This document shows positions 3,605 to 64,000 of a stretch of 64,000 bases of DNA, one piece after another; position 1 is the stretch's first letter; each line of letters starts with the position of its first letter. The DNA comes from Phallusia mammillata (lineage: Eukaryota), in contig OZ281496.1 in the NCBI GenBank assembly GCA_965637545.1, forward strand, positions 16,306,001-16,370,000, read 5' to 3'. Below the pieces are notes generated by a model. That model made no database searches. It saw only the letters and a list, made by a program, of their open reading frames with translations, and had not been told where the DNA came from. Position numbers and translations under genes: made by a program.

Positions 3605-5052
3605 CAGGCGCGGGCAACATACGGCCCGCGGACAGTTTCCGATCTTACATGATAATGTGGCCCGCGGCCACAGTCCGCCGCAATCCCCCACTACTTGCTT
3701 ACTATGTCAAATTATAGTTGTAACGGACAGTAACGCTCACCAACAGCCAAAAACTTTCCTGTCGTTGTTACCATTGCACATTTGTGTGTGGTCCGCTTTC
3801 ACGGTTTGCTTTGTTTCCACACGTGTAGCCTAGCTAGTGCTTCAGCAGCATCTAAGTTTGTGGTTTGTGCATTAAATTTGCTGTGGTGAATAATTTTATG
3901 TTATATCAATTAAATTGTTTGGACTGTATTGCAATTGTGACGTTCTTGGTTGTATTTGGTTTATTAGGTGGCGAATATCCGCATCTGAAACTGAGACTAT
4001 CTTATTCTGCCAATCAAGAGACGACTGTAAGGTAGAATTGGCAAAAAAGCTTGAATTCTACAATAGTGATTGTTAGTTCTTTTTTCTGTGTGTTTTTCGA
4101 TTCTTTGTTTTTTAAATTAATTTAGAATTTACAGTAAGTATTTTCCCATGGATTTTAAAAGAAACGTAAAGTTGACAATGAGTGTCGCGAATTTAACAAA
4201 GATTGGATGCCCAACTACTTTTTCACACAAGTTGGCAAGAAAGCAGTGTGTTTGCTGTGCAATGAAAGTGTTGCCGTGTTTAAAGAGAAATGTTCTCAAC
4301 AGTGAAGGCATTCAGGGTGAAGCTAAAACTGTTTTCTCGCCAGCTCAGTCAGAATATCACAACACACTTTCCAACACTAAAAACTATGGCACCCCAGATG
4401 ATGATAACTGAGAAGTACACTAATATTATATCTTCACTAGACAATGAATTTGGTCGTCGTTTTGCGGACTTTAAGAAACTTTCTACTGATATCTTGATAT
4501 ATCATCCTTTACAACTGACTTTGAAAAGGTGCCGGATGCTCTACAGCTGGAGTTAATTGATCTGCAGTGTGACTCTTCCCTGAAAGAGAAATTCCAATCC
4601 GCAAGCATTGACAAATTTTATGCGTCACAAAAACCAAGTTTGCCAACTTGAGAAAGATGGCAATGAAACTACTTGTTCTGTTCGGGTCAACATACATTTT
4701 CGACCATGAACATTAACAAGACAAAGCTGCGTTCCAATCTAACTGATGTTCACGTTCAGTCTTTACTAAGGGTTTCTACGTCCTTCATGTAGCCAGAGTC
4801 CAAAGAACTTGTTGACAACTTTGATCGGCCACAGATGTCTCATTGACTTAAACAGCTATTGAAGTACATCACAGTAAAAAATTCATTAAATACTGTTTTT
4901 ATGCTTTAAACATAAAGTTTACATTAACTACGATTTATTCCTTGTATAGGTGGATAAATACGCGATTAATGTACCGATTTAGGAATCCGGGCCGCCAAGT
5001 ACTCCATGTTCCCAAAATCAGGCCCGCCGACTGGAGAAGTTGCCCGCCCCTG
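3605..5052 (+). mobile_element. Internally deleted hAT (SPIN/Charlie, GTF2IRD2-like transposase)
   Basis: 14-bp TIRs CAGGCGCGGGCAAC/CAGGGGCGGGCAAC; 8-bp TSD TACTAAAG/TACTAATG. Transposase N-terminus (KRKVDNECREFNKDW..AVCLLCNESVAVFKE) is joined to the C-terminus (LQLELIDLQCD, LFGSTYI, KLRSNLTD). Confidence 0.92.
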
Positions 5053-5445
5053 TACTAATGTATACTCGTCATTTGAGAACTTTCGCTTCTGTGATTTTGT
5101 GCAAATTCAGCATTCACTTTGCTTTCTGTCTGCATGTCATCATGAGTTTTTAACGGTCGTTCTGTTTCTGCTTTATGTCACATTTGTCCATTACTGTTTA
5201 CATTAAGCAAATTTAAAATAAGCGTAAGCGTGACTATTGACTGGAAAAGTGGTACAAGTTGCGACAACTCAAGTTAAAAATCGCTGTTTTGAAAGCAAAG
5301 TAAATAAGCAACTGACAAGTGCGCTCTAAAAGTAAGTTGAAACAGAAAGTAAATATAGTTGGAAGTGTCGCATTTACTTCTTGTTTTTCAGAATGTGACG
5401 TAATTTTCTAAATTGTTTGGTCTATTGTCGTAATTCGCATGTAAT

Positions 5446-9074: not shown

Positions 9075-10054
9075 GACTAAGCGGTAGTTCTTAGTTTTTA
9101 CATTTTATTACCTATAGGTGTTAGCAATCGAGTTTCTGTTAAACATGTTTTCTTGATCATTCAACACCATTTTTTGGCCAATTGGAGTTTTAGGTTGGTA
9201 TCTGCACTAGAAATTATTGGCTTAACTTACGGCCCAAAATTGGTTCAGTCATCGTAACTTCAAGCCAATTTTGGAATGTCGAGTGAAGATCACATTTCGA
9301 TTATTGTTTGCCAGTACAAAGTTTGGACTCGTTGAAAGTTTGGATTTTAAATATATTTGTCTTACAATAAGCTGTTACATAGTACATCTAAAAACAATGC
9401 CGTAACAATCATCAACATAAGACATAAAAATGTTTCTGCTTTTATTTCTAGTCCGCGCATGTTTTGTTAGCATAACCTATTGCAAAAAAGTTATGCCTTT
9501 ACTACTTCTTTACAAATCACGCAAATTGCAAAAATCAAGCCATTGTCTAGGCACACCAAGTACAAACACAACTTTCACTTCAATAGGCTAGTTTTATAAT
9601 CATTTGAATATTTTATAATCTTTTTATTCTTATTAACACTAAATGACGTTAATCTACGCCGTTTTCAAACAGCCCTAAATACCGTTTTCGAATCGTGGGT
9701 ACCGTCCCGCTCGCTAGCAAACAAGGACGCGCGCCTGCCCAAAATGTCCAAAAAGTGTTCACTTTTGACCCCAATATCTCGAACCAAACAAAGCTGAACA
9801 GAAAAATTTGAAAATAACACTATTTTGGTTTCGCAGTACATGTCTATTGGTTTCCCTTGCGTAACAAGGTAATCGCGACTCTCGCCGGAGCCAGATCGAT
9901 GAGTACCTTCGGTTTCCTGAAGTACGAGTAGCTCAACCAGTGAAGGCCGGACCATTTGAGAGCCATTACTATGTTTTTTTCCCCTTTTGCTTGACAAGAA
10001 TCACTGATAATATTTATTATTAACCATTAAATAATCAATTTTATTTAAACGTTT

Positions 10055-11167
10055 GGTACAATGCATTTGTCACAGTACCAGACTTCATTTTTGTCACAAA
10101 CACTATTTGGAACTGTTACCTTTACACAGCCAGGGTGGTACCATTCATTACATCTGTCGCATTCAGTATAAAACTGCTTGTTGTCAGCTAACCTATACTT
10201 GCAGTAAACTGGAATCTCATAAGGAGTCCCTGATGCGCTTTGTAATTGCCGGTCCAGAAATTATTTCGTTCGGAGAAACTTTTCTGTTTTCCAGCCACTT
10301 TCCAATCATCTCGCGCAAACTCGCCTCCTCAAACACCGCGTCTTCAGGTTGCATACCGATGCAAATCGCAGCAGCAAATGCTATCCCGAACGGACCGCAG
10401 TTTCCTGATCCTGCTCTCTGTCGAGATACATTGGGGAAAACACAATTAATATATTTGTTGTTACAGGTAATAAAATGGGGAGTTGTTCTATCTTGTATGT
10501 TGTGTTACCACCCCACTATCGTAAATCATAACAGTGGAGTCATTGTCTGAAAATACACTGGACGCAGTAACCCAGTGATTGCCCTGGACATTTATGATTT
10601 GAACAAATTTTTGCTGAGGTGTGTGAATAGGGGACCTGAAAACGCCAAACAACTTTGCAAGCCTCCAATATGAGGAAACTGCTCAGAAAGAATGTTCATT
10701 GCTGAGTCTATATGGTTATCAACAAGCCAAGTTTTGTTCCTTTTTACATCCACCAGTCATCTGACGTTAAAGAAAACTTTGTTGCACAACAGCGCCGAGC
10801 TAAACCTTTTGTTAATTGTCTTAATTTTTTTTGCATCGTTATTTCGCTGAACTGTTGAGCGTAAGCAGTCCCGCAGGAACACTGCGGGATATTGCATATA
10901 CTTTTCCATGCTTTTGTCTGGAGCTGTGAGCCTACTTCGTTTATGCCTCATTTCTTTAGCTTCTCTTGATTCTGTTCTTATCCTTATACCACCTTTGTAC
11001 TCGCGAACCAACCCAAGATGACTGTCTGAATAAACATGTGCTAACTCATGTAAGCCTTTAAATATTGTTTCTTGACACCCAGTCCTTTTCAATTCCTGTT
11101 GACTTTTTTCCATTACGCCTTGCGTTCGATTGTGTTTGGTAAAACTCTGTTCAGTTCTTTTCTGCAC
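10055..11167 (-). pseudogene. Ulp1/C48-like cysteine protease followed by a PHD finger (frameshifted)
   Basis: WLVDNHIDSAMNILSEQFPHIGGLQ; QIINVQGNHWVT (His); MIYDS (Asp); QRAGSGNCGPFGIAFA (Gln/Cys); then WYHPGCVK...WYCDKC (PHD second half). Confidence 0.75.
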
Positions 11168-12049
11168 TTCATTGTAAAAATCAGAATAACCTTTAAAAAC
11201 CTGAGTTTCACCGCGTCGAACTGTTTGACTTTTTTAGCATGTTTCTAAAAAATTTGGAATATAACGACCCTTTACAAAACCGTAAATTTTGTCCCAATCG
11301 CCTGGCGGCAAAACAAATAAAGTTTTGGTCCGCTAATATGTCTGAAGGGGTCCAAAAACTTTACATCACACTTAGACTGAGTATTAGTGTCAACAAACTC
11401 TGGACTGTTACTATCATACTGCGATTCTTTTACTCTTGTGTTGCCAAACACGTTTTATACATTTTGCTTTCGTTTGTATTTTTTTTCTTTGACATTTTTT
11501 TGTTGTAAATAAATTTGACAAGACTTTCCAAGTTTGAATAAGGATTAACATCTGTAATATTCAAACTAGCTGCCACAACTTCTATTTCAGATTTGGGTTA
11601 TTTCTTATCAATTGGCCCCACCAATTAATCGAACATTTTGAACAGCACAAACCTTATTTGAAGTTGTACTCCTTAATGGTGTTGTTTATGGCGACGGTGT
11701 GGTCGGTGTCGATGTTGTCGAACGGCTTGCTGAGCTGCTTGGTGGTTGTGGGCTGCTCCTTAGTGGTAAATGGCTTGATGAGCTGCTCCCCGGTGATGAC
11801 GTTGGTGTCGGGGTTTTTGTAATCTGTTGAGTTTTTTTAGGTTTTATTATTTTTTTCAAAAGCAACTTATTATAAAAACTTACCCGGGGTTTTACCAACG
11901 GTCTTGTTGCCTGGCCATAGCTTTGGCGGACCGCCGTTGCCTTATTTTCTGGGTATCTGATACCGGCAAATCAGACAACGCAGGAAAACCGTCGGAAAGT
12001 GATACCTGAGTTTATTTTCTAACTAACTTCGGAAATGTTGGTGGTGTAA

Positions 12050-12840
12050 TCCGTTCCTCAAGCTGCCGCAAATAAACGGTCAGTCCATCATCGGAGAGGT
12101 GAACCTTGTCGTACCACAGCTCGGGTGTTTGGTACAGCGAGGTCCTAATACGTGACTTTGCTTCTACTTGCAGCCTCACGAATTGCCAGGTTTACAAGGG
12201 GAATAAAGCCACGCTTTTGCTGAATTCCACAACAGTATACCTATATTTACAAGATTTAATAAAAAGCGAAAACAAAAACTACATCCCAGTGTCCCAATGG
12301 CACGACAAAAACTGAAACACGGTACATTATTAAGTTACGGAACCCTGACCAAATGTGCAGGAATACAGACCTATACAATACAGAGATTTTGTATCCATGG
12401 AGGTTTAAAAGGCGTTTACTGGAGATGAAGTTAATTAGCAACTTGGTTAACGAAACCGGTTATACAAGAAAAAACGACCAAGGTACAAAAAGAATATGTT
12501 GTCCATTCCACACTGACCTTTGCATGGGTGTACAACGATTTGGTGCAGTTGATCAGCCGAAGAATATCCCCGAAAATCTTTCTGACCAACCAACGCCACT
12601 TGTTTCTAACTGTAAACGCTTCCCTTGGCCAAATCCACGACGTCGACGTTTCGAATTGGGGGACGATTTTGCAACTCCGTGATTCCGTGTTCAATGGTAC
12701 CACCAGGGATGGTAACAGCTTCAAAACGAAAAACAAAAAGGTTTTACCACAGGACAAACTAAGTCCGGTGCGTTGTTGTCCGAAACGAACAGTACGCAGC
12801 TCTTCTCTTCTTTTCTGGTTCCAGGCACCAGCCATTTAAC
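12050..12840 (-). pseudogene. SGNH/GDSL hydrolase-like gene, copy 1 (spliced, degenerate)
   Basis: Block I-like VLFVSDNNA, block II-like AVTIPGG, VDVVDLAKG, DILRLINCTKSLYTHAK followed by a GT donor, VNLAIREAASRSKVTY, and block V-like YDKVHLSDDG. Confidence 0.65.
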
Positions 12841-12844
12841 CTCC

Positions 12845-13345
12845 CTATCGCAAATCATGTCATTGTCTGAAAATAAATTGGACGCAGTAATCCAGTGATT
12901 GCCCTGGACATTTATGATTTGAAAATTTTTTGCTGAGGTGTGTGAATAGGGGGAAATGTGTTCGTACAAACTGAAAACACCAAACAACTTTGCAAGCCTC
13001 CAATATAAGGAAACTGGTGAGAAAGAATGTACATTGCTGAATGTTTCATGTTTACATCCAATAAGTCATTTGACGTTAATGAAAATTGTGTTTCCCACTT
13101 TGTTGCACAACAGCGCTGTGCTAAACTCGATTGTTCGTGATCACATAAACATTTTGTTAATTGACACTAATTTTTCTTCCTTATTTCGCTGTTCTGTAGA
13201 GCCTATGTATTCCCACAGAGACACTGCCGGTGCCGGAGCTTTGAGCCTACCGTTTTTGCCACTTTCCTTAATTCTGTTTGTTTCGCTTCCTCTTTTCTCC
13301 TATCACAATCCATATTTGTACTCGCGAACCAACCCAAGATGAGTG
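12845..13345 (-). pseudogene. Second, truncated copy of the Ulp1-like region
   Basis: Nucleotide homology to 10520-11035 (HLGLVREYK...QIINVQGNHWITASNLFSD); stops abruptly at the start of SGNH copy 1. Confidence 0.75.
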
Positions 13346-13379
13346 GTGGTGTGTGTGAGGTCAGTGCTGGTTTTGGTTT

Positions 13380-13890
13380 GCTCCTCGGTGTCGGCTGTGG
13401 TCATTCCTCAAGCTGCCGCAAATAAAAGTTGGTCCATCATCAGAGAGGTAGAAGCTCTGGTGAGTTTGGCACAGCGAGGCCCAAATACGTGACTTAGCTT
13501 CGACTTGCAGTCTAACGAATTGCCAGGTTTACGTCGGGAATAAAACCACGCTGGAGATGAAGTTAATTAGCAGTTCGGTTACCGAAACAACCTATACACG
13601 AAAAACCCATCCAAATAGTCCATGTACAAACAGAATGTGTTCATTTTACACTGACCTTTGCACGCGGGGGTACAACGTGTTGGTGCAGTTGATCAACCTA
13701 AAGATCGAGCGACATCAAAAAGTGTCCCCTTTAGGAAAGGAGAGCCACAATAAATACTACGGTACAGGATACTTACTTAGGAAACACCAAATCCAGGGCA
13801 CTTCAGGATTCAAAATCCATTGCTGCTTTGAATTTTCATAATTATTTTACTTTGTGGGAACAGTCATAAAGTTTGCACATGTGTTTGCTA
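13380..13890 (-). pseudogene. SGNH-like gene, copy 2
   Basis: Homologous to 12050-12560 and an inverted near-copy of 63525-64000. Confidence 0.65.
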
Positions 13891-32679: not shown

Positions 32680-34450
32680 CAATGGATTCCGTCTGCCAAA
32701 ATTTACCTTTTGCTTTTGTTTATCTTGACGATATTCTTGTGGCCAGCAAAACTTCAAGTGAGCATATTGACCATCTACGACAACTGTTCAAAAGATTAGA
32801 CAGTGCAGGTTCGGGCAGACAGAAATTGATTTTCTTGGACATCAAGTTAATGTCCATGGGGCCAAGCCCTTGCCGGAAAAAGTGGAGGCAATACGAAGAT
32901 TCAAACGCCCAACAACAATTGCAGGTTTACAGCAATTTAGTGGTATGATAAATTTTTATCATCGATTCATACCATCAGCTGCTACCACAATGTTACCCAT
33001 ATACAAAGCTCTGTCTAATAAGCCAAAGGATTTGACGTGGACAGAAAGCCTCAAAACCGCTTTTGATGAAGCGCATTGCAAAAGCTACGCTACTTAACCA
33101 CCCAGGGCTCGAGGCAAAAACCGCTTTAACTGTGGACGCTTCCCAGTTTGCTGTTGGCGCAGTTTTGGAGCAGCAAATCGACAGTCAATGGAGACCTTTG
33201 GCGTTTTTTAGCAAATGCCTACGGCCAGCTGAGCTTAAGTACAGCAACTTTGACCGCAAGCTGTTGGCATTGTATTTGGCTGTCCGCCATTTTAAATATT
33301 TTTTGGAAGGAAGATCTTTCACTGCGTACACGGACCATAAACCACTCACATTTGCCATTAATAAAGCTACAGATCCGTGGTCAGCACGTCAGCAACGACA
33401 CCTTTCATACGTTTCAGAGTTTACCACTGATATTAAACATATCGATGGTAAAAACAACCATGTTGCTGATGCACTCTCCAGGTCCTTGCTCGCAAGTGTT
33501 TCCGACTGTGTTAATTTTGATTACAAGTTATTGGCTGTAGCCCAGCAAGAAGCTCATGACGAGATGCAAGCTTACCGCACCTCTATTACTAAGCTGAAGT
33601 TCAAAGATATTGCTTACGACCATAAAGGAACTATTATTGTCTGTGATATTTCTGGCAGGAATCCTCGACCATCAGTTCCTCAAGCTTGGCGAAAACGCGT
33701 TTTTCATGCAATCCACGGACTGTCGCATCAAAGTTTGTGTGGCATGGAATGCGAAGAGATGTTAGTACATGGGCGAAGCAATGCTTGTCGTGTGAAAGGG
33801 CGAAAATTCAGCAACACATTCGCGCTCCATTGGCTGAATATCCACCCACAGCGACACGTTTCAGTCACTTGAATATAGATATAGTAGGACCGCTGCCGCA
33901 ATCACAAGGATATACCTATCTCCTTACAATTGTCGACCGTGTTACTCGATGGCCAGAAGCCATACCGATGGAGGATCAAACGACAATGACATGTGCTAGA
34001 GCCTTCATTAGCAACTGGATTGCCCGATTTGGCATTCCAGCAGATATTTCTTCAGATCGTGGGGCGCAATTCACTTCAGAACTGTGGTCAATGATGAATC
34101 AGCTTTTAGGCATTAAGCTTCATAAAACCACGGCTTTCCACGCGCAAGCAAACGGTCTCGTGGAACGATTTCATAGACACTTAAAAAGTGCTCTCACGGC
34201 CCGTATGAGCAGTTGAAATTGACTTGATGAGTTACCATGGGTACTTCTAGGAATTAGAACCATACCTAAAGAAGATTTACAAGCATCGTCCGCTCAGCTT
34301 GTATATGGTGCGCCGATACGGATACCGGGAGACATCGTTCCACTGAAGAATCCTTCGTCGGATTTAGCAACACTTCTCCCTACTCTAGAAGACACCATTT
34401 TAAAGCAGGCTCCGATGCGTATGTCCCGCCATGGTCTAAAAAAGTCAGCT
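32680..34450 (+). pseudogene. Ty3/Gypsy pol fragment (RT end, RNase H, integrase), CsRn1-like
   Basis: YLDDILV; FLGH; DASQFAVGAVL..AFFSK..YTDHKPL..VADALSR; HLNIDIVGPLP..SDRGAQFTS..NGLVERFHR; LPWVLLGIRT; frameshifts and small deletions. Confidence 0.95.
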
Positions 34451-43110: not shown

Positions 43111-43879
43111 AAAACTGTAACCTTATGTGACAAGTGGCTTGGTTATGATGGCATATATTCGATTGTTGAACAATGAATGGTTTCTCAAAATGAGAAAAAA
43201 AGGGGTGTTAATTCGTATGTTTTTGTCTGTTGGATTCGTTGATGAGAGTTTGTGTGTGTTAGACCAGAGACTACTAAGCTTAGAAATCAAAGCAAGGATG
43301 CACAAGAGGCAGTAGCTCGTGCAGAAGGGCATTTCATTTCCGTTGCAACTTAAATATGCAGCCAAGCTTCGTAAGCTGGTTAAGCAAGTGCAAAATTAGC
43401 ATGTGGTAATATAAAACACCTAAAGATCTGTACAAACATGGTAATTAATTTAAATTAGGAGTCGAAATACCTTACAATGGCATTTAAGTGTCATTTTCTT
43501 GCGTTCTTAAAAGAAACATTAGAGATCGTTAATTTTCCCAAGTGTATATGACCCTCATTTGCATTTCCTGCAAGTTTATTAAAAATCCGTTGCGATTTGG
43601 CTCCAAAAATTGAGCGTCAAACCTAAACTGCGACGTTTTTGCACCAGAGTGAAGCTAGACAGCAATCGCTATTGCGCTAAAACTAAAAAAGATACGGTAC
43701 TGAAATTTTGACACAATTTTCTAAGCTTTTAGAGCGTTTCAGCGCACAAACTTTCGAAAAAAATATTTTTCAGTTATTAATACGCTTATGTTGAAATTAA
43801 TATTCATCGATATGAACGTCATAACGCCAGGGGTACTCCATAAAATGTCTTGCAGAGTCTTCTCATAAACAAATGCTTC

Positions 43880-47692: not shown

Positions 47693-49225
47693 TTAAGATC
47701 TATTGGCTATGATATCCTGCCATGGTAATCGTCCTGCGGGTGAATTAAAATATTCTTTAAATTCGTATCGTATGTGTGATGCAGCTCTCGTGCAATTGTT
47801 AGAGCTCATTTGTCCAAGTGGAAATAGGTTTCCTCCCAAGTCTTCCACTCTCCATCTTCCTGGAATAACAACACCATTGTCCTCTCGTGTAATTGTTAGA
47901 GCTCATTTGTCCAAGTGGAAATAGGTTTCCTCCCAAGTCTTCCACTCTCCATCTTCCTGGAATAACAACACCATTGTCCTCTCTGTCCACATGACATGGT
48001 GGACAGTATAAATAACTTCTTGGCTGGTTATGTTGTTTCTGCAAAAAGTTGTGAAGGCAACATGCAGTCTTGGTTATTAAAACAGCATTTTCTACATCGG
48101 CTATTATTGGGCGTTTGAACACTCTCCAACGAGTTACAAGTATTCCAAATGTGTTTTCAATGACACGTCGGGCTCTTGACAAACGGTAATTGAAAACACG
48201 CTTTTCTGCAGACAAGTAATGACCTGGATATGGTCTCATCATATTTTGCTTTAAAGGAAAAGCTGCATCACCTACGAAGCAATAAGGCACAGAAACTGAA
48301 GTGTTCCTGATATTCTCTGGAGGTGGAAAAGGAAGCTTATCACTAAGAAAATCTTTACCAAAACTTGAGTTTGCAAATACTCCTCCATCACTGTGCCTCC
48401 CGGAATCACCAATATCTACCACAGAAAAGCAGTAATCTGCTGAACTTACTGCTAATAAGATAATGCTGTGGTAACCCTTATAGTTGAAGAATTCTGACCT
48501 TGAATGAGGTGGCGACTGTATTGCAATATGTTTGCCATCTATTGCTCCCATACACATAGGAAAATCCCACTGCTTTTCAAACTGTGCTGCAATTTCTCGC
48601 CATTCAGCTTGTGAATTTGGCATCCGTAAACAAATTGACTTAAAGCATAACATATTGCTCTGCATGTCTCTGATATGATGTTACATAAGGTGGCGCGACC
48701 AACACGGTAGTTAAATGCAATTGCTTGTTGAGAATCACCTGTAGCTAGGTATCTGCAACAAAAACACTTAAAAATTTAGAACAAAAATTACTTCCTCAAA
48801 AACCATACAAAAAATCACCTTAATGTCATAGCCAATCTCTGAGAGGATGATATCGGCTTTCTCCATCGCGTCGTTTGCTTTTTTATATGTGGAGAAACCA
48901 ATGAAAGCAAGTAGTCAAATGTAGACACATCCATCCTAAAATATCTGTGAAAGCTTTCTCCATCATTCCTCATGTGCCTCACAAGGATTTGTTCCCCTTG
49001 ACTCTCCCGTCTTTGCAAAATGGGCCTCACCCACCACCTTTCACAAAATTAACCTTACATGATGTTGTAATTTTAGCTTATTGTAATTTGTAAGTATTTG
49101 CTTAGGTTAAAAAATAATGCAAATTTTCTGACGTACCTCCGGTTCTTTGCTTCTGAACTTTTGTAGTACAAATACAACAACAAACTCTGTTCTTCCAACA
49201 GCAACAAAATTGCGTTGTTGTGCAT
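47693..49225 (-). pseudogene. Harbinger DDE transposase (HARBI1-like), 3 exons, two lesions
   Basis: WWVRP, YFRM, RLAMTLRYLATGD, GAIDGKH, SDGGVF, FVGDAAFPL, VIENTFG; 1-nt frameshift near 48640 and a 97-bp tandem duplication at 47785-47975. Confidence 0.92.
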
Positions 49226-49401
49226 ACCGATAAAGCACTACAGTCAGCCGTTTTTATTGAACTGAAATATTCCTAAAACATAAGTGGTGCGAACGACCTA
49301 GCGGTTAGCGTGTCGCGTCAGACTATCCGGCGAAGCGCGACGCAAACCGTTGCCGTCAAGCGCGTCTTGTGTGAACCGGCCTTAACCCTTGCAAGATTGG
49401 C

Positions 49402-50179
49402 AATGGCGTCTCTAATACGGTACATAGAGGCGGGAAAGCAGATGGGTCTTGTTGGCCAAGACCTGCGTCGATACGCCGATGAGCAGATGATTAAGGAAGA
49501 GGAACGTGAGGTTGCGCAGTGGAGACGCGATGTCGAGGCTGCACAGAGAAAACGCGATGCAGAGGCTGCGCAGTGGAGACGCGATGCAGAGGCTGCGCAG
49601 TGGAGACGCGATGCCGAGGTTGCGCAGAGAAAACGCGATGCAGAGGCTGCGCAGTGGAGACTCGATGCCGAGGTTGCGGCTGCGCGGAGAAGACTCGAGG
49701 CTGCGAAGAGAAAACTTGAGGCCGAACGAAAAATCCGCGAGCACGAACTAGCCATGAAGAAGCTTGAGTTGGAAGCTAAGCACCGCCTTGCAGAAAAAAC
49801 AAACAGGGTTACAACTAATGCAGGCAAGTGTCCAGGATGCCTGACATGCGTGCATAAGTTTGGTAGAATCAAGAAAGTCGACCTGGACCGTGTCCACCTG
49901 GTGGAAGAGCAAGGGCGCATTCCAGGGCCAATGAATAAACGGCTTGTGACAACTTCTGTTGAGAAGACGGAAATCTGCGAATCAGTGAAGCAAAACGTCG
50001 AACCGAGGGACGAGCAAGACAAAGACTCTTCGCAGCGATGCATTGAAGAGGAAGTGCAGATGTTTGACAAGGAAGAGTCGGTCTCTGTGGCACAGGCGCA
50101 AACCGCCACGATTCAGACGAGCGCTGATGAGAACGAAGCAGAGTCATCGCAGGAGCTGATCAAAATGCAATTACATTGA
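49402..50179 (+). pseudogene. Gypsy gag N-terminus with 27-bp repeats, fused to downstream remnants
   Basis: MASLIRYIEAGKQMGLVGQDLRRYADEQ..EERE..REHELAMKKLELE; no RT, RNase H or integrase core follows. Confidence 0.75.
49508..49680 (+). repeat. 27-bp coding tandem repeat (about 6.5 units, EAAQWRRDA)
   Basis: Consensus GAGGCTGCGCAGTGGAGACGCGATGCA. Confidence 0.95.
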
Positions 50180-53036: not shown

Positions 53037-54666
53037 ATGGACACAAACAAGGCTCAATTTTACCTCTTGTGTTGCAAATACTTGCTGCAAGTATACTCAG
53101 TTTTTTCTTATTTTCAAAAACGTCAAAGGTCAAGAAGGGTATTGTTTGCAGTTTTATCAAAAACAAAATCTAATCAGACAGAGAAAAAGTTAAAAAGAAT
53201 TTGGATGTTACCAAGGTACTATGCATTTCACTGCCGACTTATCTTAAGTTTCAGGTTTAAAATTTTTGTATTGCTTCAGATCACAAGATTTTTGGGAAAA
53301 AAATGTCAGGAATTTTGATGATTCCCAGTGGATAAAACATTTTAGAATGCGCAAAGCTGACTTTGAACGATTAGTTGGATTGGTCTGGAATGAAATGAAA
53401 CCTGGTTAGTTGACAATTCTTTTTTTTTTTTGTTTTTTTTTCAGTACTTTTGTATTTTTCAGACGAATTTGCTGTTAGACAACCAATTGATACAAAAAAA
53501 CGTGTTGCCATTGGTTTATACAAGCTTGCATCCTCTGCTGAGTACAGAACCATAGGTGAACTGTTTGGAGTTAGTGAAGCTTCTGTACATAACTGTCTAT
53601 TGCGGTAAGTTTTGAGAATTATATTCTTGTCTAAAATAGCTAAAAACTTGCTTTTGTATCAGGTCATGTCTAAAACAACTAAAAACTTGCTTTTGTATCA
53701 GGTTGTGTAATGCCCTCGTGAAACAGATAACAAATCACATATTTATGCCTGGCAATGAAGAGGCCCAAGAAATAGCCAGAAGATTCGAGGAAAAGTCACA
53801 CTTTCCTCAGGTATGAGAAAATATGTTTTAAATTTGCAAGGTGTATATAATTGCTCTTTGTTCCTAGGTAATGGGCTGTATTGATGGTAGCCACATAGCA
53901 GTAACTGCTCCAGTTAAAGGAAAAAAGGATTACACTAACAGAAAAGGTTGGGATTCTTTGGTTCTGCAGGGTGTTGTGGATGACATGTACCGGTAAGCAA
54001 AGTTATGTTTTATTTGTATACATGAGGTCACTCGATTTTTTTCAGTTTCAGAAACATTTCTGTAAAAATGCCAGGAAGTTGCCACGATGCTACAGTCTTC
54101 AAGAACTCTGGATTATTTAAAAATTCCAATATGCTTCCACAGGTTGGTATTTGATACACATGGTGTTTTAGTGATAAACTGAGTTTTAAATGTTGTTTTT
54201 TTGTTCAAAGGTCCCGATTGTAATTGAGGGATTTCGTGTGCCATTACTAATCCTTGGTGATCCAGCATACCCACTGCTGTCCTGGTTAATTAAGCCATTT
54301 ATTGGTTCAAATCTTTCAGCAGAAAAGGAATCTTTCAACTGCTATCACAGCAGTGCACGAATAGCAGTTGAAAATGCATTTGGAAAACTAAAGGCACGAT
54401 GGCGTATTTTAAGAAAAATTGAGTGTGATATAACTTTTGCTCCTAAAATCATTGGGGCTTGCTGCATATTACATAATATGTGTGAAGATTTAAATGTGCC
54501 CATTGCTGATACTGTGGGTCGACTGCAATTCACTACTGTTGTGCCTCAGCAGCCAGTTAGTCGTCCATGTGATGCTGCAGACCAAGATGGTGTACTATGT
54601 AGAAATTCTTTGCTGTCACATGTTGTAAAATCTTTGCCATTGCGTGAATCTAGCCGCTTCCTTTAA
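53037..54666 (+). CDS. Harbinger DDE transposase, 7 exons (53037-53215, 53280-53404, 53463-53604, 53702-53810, 53868-53992, 54046-54142, 54211-54666), 410 aa, apparently intact
   Basis: HFRM, RVAIGLYKLA, GCIDGSHI, PGSCHDA, LGDPAYPL, AVENAFGKLKARWR, CCILHN; all introns GT-AG, spliced length 1233 nt with no internal stop. Confidence 0.9.
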
Positions 54667-63524: not shown

Positions 63525-64000
63525 TAACACATGTGCAAACTTTATGACTGTTCCCACAAAGTAAAATAATTATGAAAATTTCAAAGAAGCAATGGATTTT
63601 GCAATCCTGAAGTGCCCTGGATTTAGCGTTTCCTAAGTAAGTATCCTGTACCGTAGTATTTATTGTGGCTCTCCTTCCCTAAAGGGGACACTTTTTGATG
63701 TCACTCGATCTTTAGGTTGATCAACTGCACCAACACGTTGTACCCCCGCGTGTAAAGGTCAGTGTAAAATGAACACATTCTGTTTGTGCATGGACTATTT
63801 GGATGGTTTTTTCGTGTATAGGTTGTTTCGGTAACCGAACTGACGTAAACCTGGCAATTCGTTAAACTGCAAGTCGAAGCAAAGTCACGTATTTGGGCCT
63901 CGCTGTGCCAAACTCACCAGAGCTTCCACCTCTCTGATGATGGACCAACTGTTAATTGCGGCAGCTTGAGGAATAACCACAGCCGACACCGAGGAGCAAA
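63525..64000 (+). pseudogene. SGNH-like gene, copy 5 (runs off the window end)
   Basis: Inverted near-copy of 13380-13890; DFAILKCPG, IFRLINCTNTLYPRVK followed by a GT donor, VNLAIR, HLSDDG. Confidence 0.65.

Follow-up and report, generated by a model that had tools for sequence, protein, structure and literature searches.

Two decayed copies of a probable Rehavkus-type Mutator transposon with SGNH-like, C48 and PHD domains in the ascidian Phallusia mammillata

Introduction

Rehavkus transposons are described as elements with a 9-bp target-site duplication (TSD), a PHD finger and a minisatellite which precedes the 3' terminal inverted repeat (TIR) (Dupeyron et al., PMC6446971), and an earlier broad-scale analysis, as related in the same paper, placed them with the Mutator-like elements (MULEs). 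Examples include Rehavkus-1_HR from Helobdella robusta and Rehavkus-1_TC and -3_TC from Tribolium, and a study of Tribolium satellites has described long inverted termini with variable subterminal repeats which can expand to arrays of 80 kb (bioRxiv 10.1101/2024.12.02.626372). The present work concerns a region of the Phallusia mammillata genome, located at 9.7-13.9 kb of a 64,000-nucleotide stretch (contig OZ281496.1, positions 16,306,001 to 16,370,000, referred to as the window throughout), which very probably consists of two decayed head-to-tail copies of one multicopy DNA transposon family of the Mutator superfamily, Rehavkus (foldback) type.

Individual features of the region are also known from other systems. 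Ulp1, aligned with PHD, occurs in the Mutator (MuDR) transposases of animals such as hydra and lancelet and also in the KI-MULEs of plants (Bao et al. 2010, PMC2836005); the fusion of an Ulp1-PHD pair to a transposase is therefore already published and is not new. The IS256 family comprises the bacterial kin of Mutator (PMC3169594). Ginger1 is characterized by a Gypsy-type integrase core, an H2C2 finger and a GPY/F motif (PMC2836005), and Zisupton by a TSD of 8 bp (PMC12730594).

Results

The parent copy and the derivation of the window region

Three-frame translation of 9.9-14.1 kb reveals four kinds of broken remnant on the minus strand, some of them in duplicate, namely SGNH-like, Ser/Pro/Thr linker, C48 (Ulp1) protease and PHD-finger sequences. 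The coding order from high to low coordinates is SGNH-like domain, N-terminal half of C48, SGNH-like domain, Ser/Pro/Thr stretch, about 280 aa of further coding sequence (10760-11597), C48 and PHD, which is the domain order reported in the initial annotation of the window; it was recovered here by translation, with the PHD finger assigned by Pfam and C48 by a family profile.

A search of the window's own genome (G000, with contigs designated C1, C2 and so on) at the DNA level, using the region as the query, produced eight long matches at 81-86% identity together with many fragments. The initial annotation had seen no identifiable parent for the domains, a view which does not survive this search: at C2:5.185-5.216 Mb an SGNH-like domain with one GT-AG intron is followed by a linker and then by an open frame of 997 aa. 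The reference copy at this locus (L014, at C2:5.20 Mb), to which all element coordinates refer, encodes in the 997-aa frame a DDE transposase, C48 and PHD with zero stops, and two SGNH-like exons lie upstream of the frame. The stop-free frame reaches 1,163 aa when it is extended back through the linker, which is in frame with the transposase and is represented in L014 by coding repeats of 72-78 bp at 2270-2560. Among the copies that retain a coding body, only the C2 copy has kept the transposase frame open. Long TIRs and 9-bp TSDs are present at the family's elements, and the suggestion of the initial annotation that the region belongs to a DNA transposon is borne out.

The younger of the two window copies aligns with the parent in three BLAST blocks: L014 1303-2267 corresponds to window 12726-11784 (83%), L014 2482-3041 to window 11767-11219 (85%), and L014 4420-6048 to window 11219-9702 (85%). 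Because this copy is colinear with L014 save for a clean deletion at 11219, the coding stretch at 10760-11597, which had been recorded as approximately 250 aa of unknown coding sequence, is identified as the N- and C-terminal remainder of the transposase on either side of a 1,378-bp deletion. The deletion removed transposase residues 121-580, including D309, D382 and the C428-x2-H431 pair, while the motif of the third catalytic residue is kept in the C-terminal remainder (Glu at window 11108-11110). The younger copy as a whole (9702-12858) has lost the catalytic core and both termini and is interrupted by several frameshifts and by stops, at least five of the stops falling inside the protein match; at its 3' end it stops at a partial unit of the subterminal repeat, where no TIR is found.

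The older copy (12859-13701) follows L014 1488-1996, from where its alignment passes straight to 4615-5176; its identity to the reference copy is 75-79%, as compared with 83-85% for the younger part. It is a fragment of a short form of the element in which SGNH is joined directly to C48-PHD, and its C48 part ends at the equivalent of L014 5176. The tandem duplication proposed in the initial annotation stands only in part. Direct repeats do exist, spaced about 2,320 and about 1,140-1,340 bp apart, but the identity between the older and younger parts is only 67-79% (67% at the 12859..13345 segment), which means that the older fragment did not arise from the younger by a recent tandem duplication. 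Neither window copy is able to move or to make protein.

The transposase core

A word-based protein search with the 997-aa frame detected zero relatives, and Pfam applied to the 997-aa protein detected the PHD finger only. An exhaustive protein search with the same frame, at E<=0.001, yielded 3,909 relatives. The nearest of these are ascidian, from Phallusia mammillata itself (63% identity) and from Ciona, and further ones come from medaka, a goby and Helobdella; the alignment with a metagenome protein of 988 aa (P0003) spans residues 80-994 of the 997-aa protein. The transposase-C48-PHD layout is found in some of the relatives, including one medaka isoform.

In an alignment of 34 transposase cores, D309 (within an Asp-Ala-Thr-Gly motif) and D382 are invariant, as is H431 of the CxxH motif, and C428 of the same motif is nearly so. 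Glu617, which belongs to an Arg-Thr-x-Gly-x-x-Glu...Leu-Lys motif, occurs in each of the 20 relatives that reach that site. An AF2 model of the transposase (pLDDT 87) was compared with known structures by two aligners. Foldseek placed ISCth4, a member of the IS256 family, at the top (E 1.8e-4), followed by the P element, RAG1, Transib and Hermes, and VIA-align gave ISCth4 a Z score of 11.9 (242 residues, root-mean-square deviation 5.2) as compared with 9.6 for Hermes and the P element; retroviral integrases fit the RNase-H core only, with Z <=8.3. The frame encodes an RNase-H-fold DDE transposase of IS256-like type, with the CxxH motif situated within an insertion domain of about 235 aa.

Distant relatives of the transposase, with 25-28% identity and open frames of 1,400-2,435 aa, were also observed at C4:14800658-14802400, C2:25917964-25919574, C6:9780731-9782341 and C1:22735869-22737479. 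The C4 relative is preceded, at a distance of about 2.6 kb and on its own strand, by an SGNH-like match.

The C48 protease and the PHD finger

The PHD finger of the window copy matches PF00628 with 31.6 bits, against a cut-off of 24, and its second zinc-ligand Cys has become Tyr when compared with L014; in the parent, PF00628 matches at residues 946-992 of the 997-aa frame. The PHD finger of the intact paralogue finds EBS, PHF2, PHF8 and BPTF in the PDB. A profile of the family's C-terminal region finds the PHD fingers of PHF2, PHF8, SHL, SPP1 and BPTF there, and these matches are stronger than the one it makes to SENP1 (E 1.2e-8).

Pfam applied to the stop-free pieces of the window reported PHD alone, the C48 pieces being without a match. 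The residues expected of C48 can be located in the window as His 10575-10577, Asp 10518-10520, Gln 10418-10420 and Cys 10397-10399. The C48 domain of the intact paralogue, taken alone, scores 18.5 bits against the PF02902 cut-off of 20.7; the same model is found in 31 of 38 relatives, and the 38 aligned sequences all have the Gln and the Cys, and nearly all have the His and the Asp, in the order typical of C48. As judged from the reading frame, the transposase polypeptide itself ends in C48 and PHD, as it does in medaka and other relatives, and the two domains are not the cargo which the initial annotation had supposed.

The SGNH-like domain

In the window copy, block I of the SGNH-like domain is Ser-Asp-Asn (12775-12783), block II is Pro-Gly-Gly (approximately 12699-12710), block III has been lost by frameshift, and block V retains the Asp-x-x-His arrangement (Asp 12108-12110, His 12099-12101). 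The Ser-Asp-Asn form of block I is shared by the window copy and a second copy, L029, as opposed to Thr-Asp-Ser in Ciona, which implies that the expected nucleophile Ser is missing, with Asn in its place, in the copies read. Every copy read is decayed, so the ancestral state of block I is uncertain. In the C2 copy a tandem repeat based on a 28-bp unit stands in place of block I. With Asn at the nucleophile position, the SGNH-like domain of Phallusia mammillata may be non-catalytic.

The SGNH exons were searched singly and not as a joined, spliced model. Their matches to PF13472 are colinear, exon 2 of L014 matching at 41-105 (E 0.011) and exon 3 at 125-175 (E 0.012), and the Ciona protein P0106 matches at profile positions 57-175 (E 3.4e-5). 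An SGNH profile found zero matches among PDB sequences. The neighbours of the Ciona domain in the ESM Atlas are SGNH/GDSL clusters (feature score 0.95, TM 0.69-0.72). The assignment of an SGNH fold is weakly supported by these comparisons. The intron, which the initial annotation had already predicted, is confirmed: in L014 its borders are AAG/GTCAGT ... ACAG/GT, and the junction is gap-free, and therefore colinear, with the Ciona proteins P0017 and P0106.

Three observations concern the linkage of the domain to the transposase. In Ciona P0106 (LOC108950602), a single predicted protein, SGNH is fused through a repeat linker to the transposase N-terminus; the SGNH tail is in frame with the linker in the window copy and in two further copies (L030 and L031); and in a second family (59% protein identity; C2:14.53 Mb and C1:3.91 Mb) SGNH again lies upstream of the transposase. 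On the strength of this fusion, of the in-frame linkers and of the linkage in the second family, SGNH is regarded as a stable N-terminal module of the ascidian lineage, and it is probably also present near a third family (28% identity). A literature search for SGNH with Mutator-like transposases found no paper, which is weak evidence of novelty since Repbase Reports lie outside the coverage of that search; the SGNH module, shared by Phallusia and Ciona, may be the sole new feature of the element.

Element ends, subterminal repeats and target-site duplications

The C2 body is located between inverted arrays of a 364-bp repeat, with about 36 and about 30 units (13 and 11 kb), at C2:5185861-5199145 and 5204923-5215913 (the arrays and the body make up loci L022, L013, L014 and L023). 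TRF gives the repeat within L014 a period of 364 and 11.2 copies, and across the copies of the family arrays of this repeat, with about 2 to about 36 units, are found inside both termini. A terminal segment of 750 bp lies outside the left C2 array, and other copies end at the identical base; the segment occurs on all large contigs, often as close inverted pairs.

TSDs were found at four of the five inverted pairs that were read. Three are exact and 9 bp long, namely AAAAGTCTC at C4:16374174-16378846, CAAAATCAC at C8:7445630-7447854 and TATCTAAAT at C5:25453916-25464792, and at the remaining one, C4:11845943-11847945, 7 of 9 bases match. The TIR arms have lengths of 692-879 nt and a complementarity of 90-98%. 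The C5 element, with 10.9 kb, contains remnants of the coding body between array-bearing TIRs, and the small elements (L035-L037) consist of little besides TIRs.

Two further observations relate to these sequences. The four outer units of the left C2 array resemble one another closely (about 99%) but share only about 85% identity with the inner units, and the window contains at 43477-43640, distant from the coding remnants, a short piece of the 750-bp terminal segment that is 79-86% identical.

The short form, local duplication and distribution

At several loci on C3 the SGNH-linker is joined straight to the segment which begins at L014 4615-4620, and all of these copies are decayed. Re-entry at or near L014 4615-4620 is shared by the window and at least five loci (L031 and L032 among them), and the junctions on the linker side vary between copies. 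The point at which the truncated C48 meets the start of SGNH is found again at the far end of the window in inverted orientation, at 86-95% identity, which indicates that the head-to-tail unit has itself been duplicated locally.

Copies with a coding body are few and are concentrated on C3 at approximately 11.4-17.7 Mb; copies reduced to their TIRs occur in larger numbers and are scattered across all large contigs. The clustering on C3 may reflect a pericentromeric graveyard or local segmental duplication. C3:15335200-15365199 and C3:15507000-15536999 share, in opposite orientation, a segmental duplication that exceeds 17 kb, has 98-99.6% identity and carries one element copy. Two copies on C3, B and C (15.35 and 15.52 Mb), are inverted segmental duplicates, 99% identical over more than 10 kb, and were for this reason not counted as independent.

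Features of the window

The features assigned to the family are collected in Table 1. The window overall is a graveyard of mobile elements, and several of its other residents can be recognized. Open reading frames (ORFs) of a non-LTR retrotransposon occupy 163-2899 on the minus strand (endonuclease and reverse-transcriptase-like, 229 and 336 aa) with an ORF of 181 aa upstream, and a frameshifted pol of a long terminal repeat (LTR) retrotransposon, with RNase H and an integrase-like part, lies at 33063-34216 on the plus strand. Two ORFs, at 47799-48665 (minus) and 54190-54666 (plus), resemble PIF/Harbinger-type transposases, a likeness drawn from sequence alone. A 289-aa ORF at 49310-50179 (plus) contains a repeated helical motif rich in Arg, Asp, Ala and Glu and is opposed on the other strand by an ORF of equal length.

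Table 1. Remnants of the transposon family in the window, with the basis of each assignment
Feature	Position	Strand	Basis
Partial unit of the 364-bp subterminal tandem repeat	9702..9824	-	82-85% to L014 5923-6048 and the C2 arrays
PHD finger, PHF2/PHF8/BPTF type	10063..10203	-	Pfam PF00628
C48 (Ulp1/SENP-like) domain, in three reading frames	10220..10756	-	Stop-free pieces
DDE transposase, C-terminal remainder (about aa 580-740 of 997)	10760..11219	-	L014 4420 onward, 85%
Junction of the 1,378-bp internal deletion (L014 3042-4419)	11219	-	BLAST blocks abut
Transposase, N-terminal remainder (about aa 1-120)	11220..11597	-	L014 2482-3041, 84.6%
Ser/Pro/Thr-rich linker	11600..11970	-	Stop-free piece 11689-11970, one frame with SGNH tail
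SGNH-like last exon, frameshifted, with block V	11980..12240	-	L014 1785-2267; acceptor AG retained
SGNH intron, approximate limits	12241..12490	-	GT-AG borders in L014
SGNH-like upstream exon	12491..12858	-	Pieces 12609-12743 and 12724-13065
Older fragment: pre-C48 region and N-terminal half of C48, to the His motif	12859..13345	-	L014 4615-5176, 74.9%
Older fragment: SGNH-like exons of the short form lacking the transposase	13402..13701	-	L014 1488-1632 and 1831-1996, 78-79%
Inverted partial duplicate (86%) of window 12805-13885	63526..64000	+	L033 1526-2501; runs past the window end

Discussion

Classification of the family

The features by which Mutator transposons are recognized are found in the family: the three exact TSDs have the 9 bp that is usual within a range of 8-11, the TIRs are long, and the DDE transposase is of the IS256/MULE type with CxxH after the second Asp. 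The region moreover fits the published descriptions of Rehavkus and Mutator elements (PMC6446971; bioRxiv 10.1101/2024.12.02.626372), and Ulp1 with PHD is likewise in print (PMC2836005), so that the transposon is not the undescribed one that the initial annotation had envisaged. A connection with Rehavkus is also provided by the Helobdella robusta homologue P0014 (E 6.4e-58), which lies inside a foldback element of 5.85 kb (L041 8805-14654, KB097639.1 approximately 2567117-2572966). This element has TIRs of about 0.8-1 kb that hold 178-bp tandem repeats, a TSD of 9-10 bp, and a coding part made up of a decayed transposase, C48 and the start of PHD, and it is probably a copy of Rehavkus.

Several points weigh against this classification or against parts of it. 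No copy has been seen which combines both ends with an intact frame, the right terminus of the C2 copy was not found within 13 kb past its right array, and the SGNH part of the same copy is without block I and out of frame with the linker. As regards the transposase, the roughly 235 aa between the second Asp and the Glu seem long for Mutator transposases; no Pfam transposase model reaches its threshold, the MULE model PF10551 appearing in 1 of 34 relatives with an E of 8e-4 that is below the cut-off, and a profile of the transposase core has zero matches among PDB sequences. As regards SGNH, matches to PF13472 are sub-threshold throughout, the best being that of Ciona P0106 with 24.8 bits against 32.9, and the AF2 model of the Ciona SGNH fragment has a pLDDT of 45 and is unusable. 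Membership in Rehavkus, finally, would follow from published descriptions of features rather than from a match to a named Rehavkus consensus, and the functional roles ascribed to PHD, C48 and SGNH are all ones that we infer.

Alternative explanations

Some of these points would be expected if the transposase represented a separate, unnamed superfamily, distant from Mutator, hAT and P, in which the 9-bp TSD and the foldback ends had arisen by convergence: the lack of a MULE Pfam match at threshold, the length of the insertion domain that separates the second Asp from the Glu, and the position of Hermes and the P element within about 2 Z units of ISCth4 all speak in its favour. This explanation is nonetheless highly improbable, because the best structural match according to both aligners is an IS256-family enzyme, and thus kin of Mutator, because the TSD is 9 bp as opposed to the 8 bp of Zisupton (PMC12730594), because the architecture is identical to that published for Rehavkus, which has been placed with the MULEs (PMC6446971), and because a homologue lies inside a Rehavkus-type element in Helobdella. 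Other assignments were considered and rejected. The analogy to Ginger and Zisupton that the initial annotation had drawn is not upheld: Zisupton/KDZ is ruled out by the 9-bp TSD and by the absence of any KDZ family from the Pfam matches of the 34 relatives at E<=0.1, and Ginger by the lack of an integrase Pfam match and by the confinement of the fit of retroviral integrases to the RNase-H core, the fold of the transposase being IS256-like. An origin from the ORF1 of a LINE (long interspersed nuclear element), against which that annotation had itself argued, was likewise ruled out, given the DDE transposase context, the TIRs and TSDs, and the lack of a reverse transcriptase.

The two remaining alternatives leave the superfamily aside and concern the status of the short form and of the region as a unit. 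If the short form SGNH-linker-C48-PHD is not debris, it would be a non-autonomous derivative that spread by means of its accessory domains, or a gene family recruited by the host, of which the older window fragment would be a dead member. The junction at or near L014 4615-4620 that is common to at least five loci and the window is suggestive of a real unit of this kind, as is the annotated 410-aa SGNH-C48-PHD protein P0017 of Ciona; against it are the stops throughout every copy read, the differences among copies in the linker-side junction, the nature of the Ciona model, which is a computational prediction without SGNH block V, and the fact that several of the copies arose by local segmental duplication and not by transposition, so that on balance this alternative is improbable. 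The initial proposal of a tandemly duplicated three-domain module without a parent, whether carried as cargo by a transposon not yet described or forming a spliced host gene, correctly identifies internal repeats, and the junction between truncated C48 and SGNH start does recur nearby. Its probability has become almost negligible, since a parent with a transposase has been found, the two parts, at 67-79% identity, are no closer to each other than to other copies, stops and frameshifts run throughout, and C48-PHD belongs to the transposase frame.

A possible mechanism and its significance

In an intact Rehavkus-type element of this family, the transposase would bind the repeated subterminal sites, excise the element and reinsert it by means of a cut staggered by 9 bp. 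The PHD finger belongs to the H3K4me3-reader class and might tether the enzyme to active chromatin, and C48 might strip SUMO, or a tag related to it, from a factor involved in chromatin, repair or silencing in the course of transposition. The combination of SGNH, transposase, C48 and PHD has no description in the literature searched. It can be imagined that an ascidian Rehavkus-type lineage added the SGNH-like, possibly non-catalytic, domain in front of the transposase-SUMO protease-PHD protein and that the short SGNH-C48-PHD derivatives act in trans as an independent module with a role in chromatin or against silencing, a scenario which must for the present be called doubtful.

For annotation, the consequence is that the region, like several look-alikes on the same chromosome, can be assigned in repeat masking to a Rehavkus-type Mutator family and is not a gene cassette. 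The family also shows foldback subterminal repeats growing into satellite arrays of 11-13 kb in a chordate relative, and it documents a range for the transposase-C48-PHD fusion that extends from annelids to fish and ascidians. The SGNH-like addition, which is common to Ciona, is a small new piece of the puzzle presented by this fusion.

Comparison with known systems

The closest described system is Rehavkus, with which the family shares the 9-bp TSD, a single long transposase frame with PHD, long TIRs, and tandem repeats just inside the TIRs. The host here is an ascidian, whereas the published elements come from arthropods and annelids (PMC6446971, bioRxiv 10.1101/2024.12.02.626372); the repeat unit here is 364 bp long and forms arrays of 11-13 kb around one copy; and an SGNH-like domain here precedes the transposase, while C48 is unmentioned in the cited descriptions of Rehavkus. 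The Ulp1-bearing Mutator transposases resemble the family in that Ulp1/C48, aligned with PHD, is attached to a Mutator-type transposase. In plant MULEs, however, ULP1 is as a rule encoded by a gene of its own or by a captured one, whereas here it shares one frame with the DDE core, and an SGNH domain is not reported for the Ulp1 transposases of PMC2836005.

Composite TIRs with tandem repeats and 9-bp TSDs are shared with other foldback elements, namely FB4/Phantom of Drosophila and Tm1 of Meloidogyne (PMC3169594) and Tetris (PMC4079207), as are the many TIR-only, non-autonomous copies and the repeats that seed satellites. Phantom differs in its defining FLYWCH finger and its Pfam MULE domain, both of which are undetected here, and it is without C48, PHD and SGNH. 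The ORF1 proteins of CR1-like LINEs (PMC4120745) offer a likeness of another kind, in that they too place an SGNH-type esterase-like domain and PHD on a mobile element; in the Phallusia mammillata family, by contrast, the domains stand on either side of a DDE transposase, a reverse transcriptase is lacking, and the element has TIRs, TSDs and an intron in SGNH.

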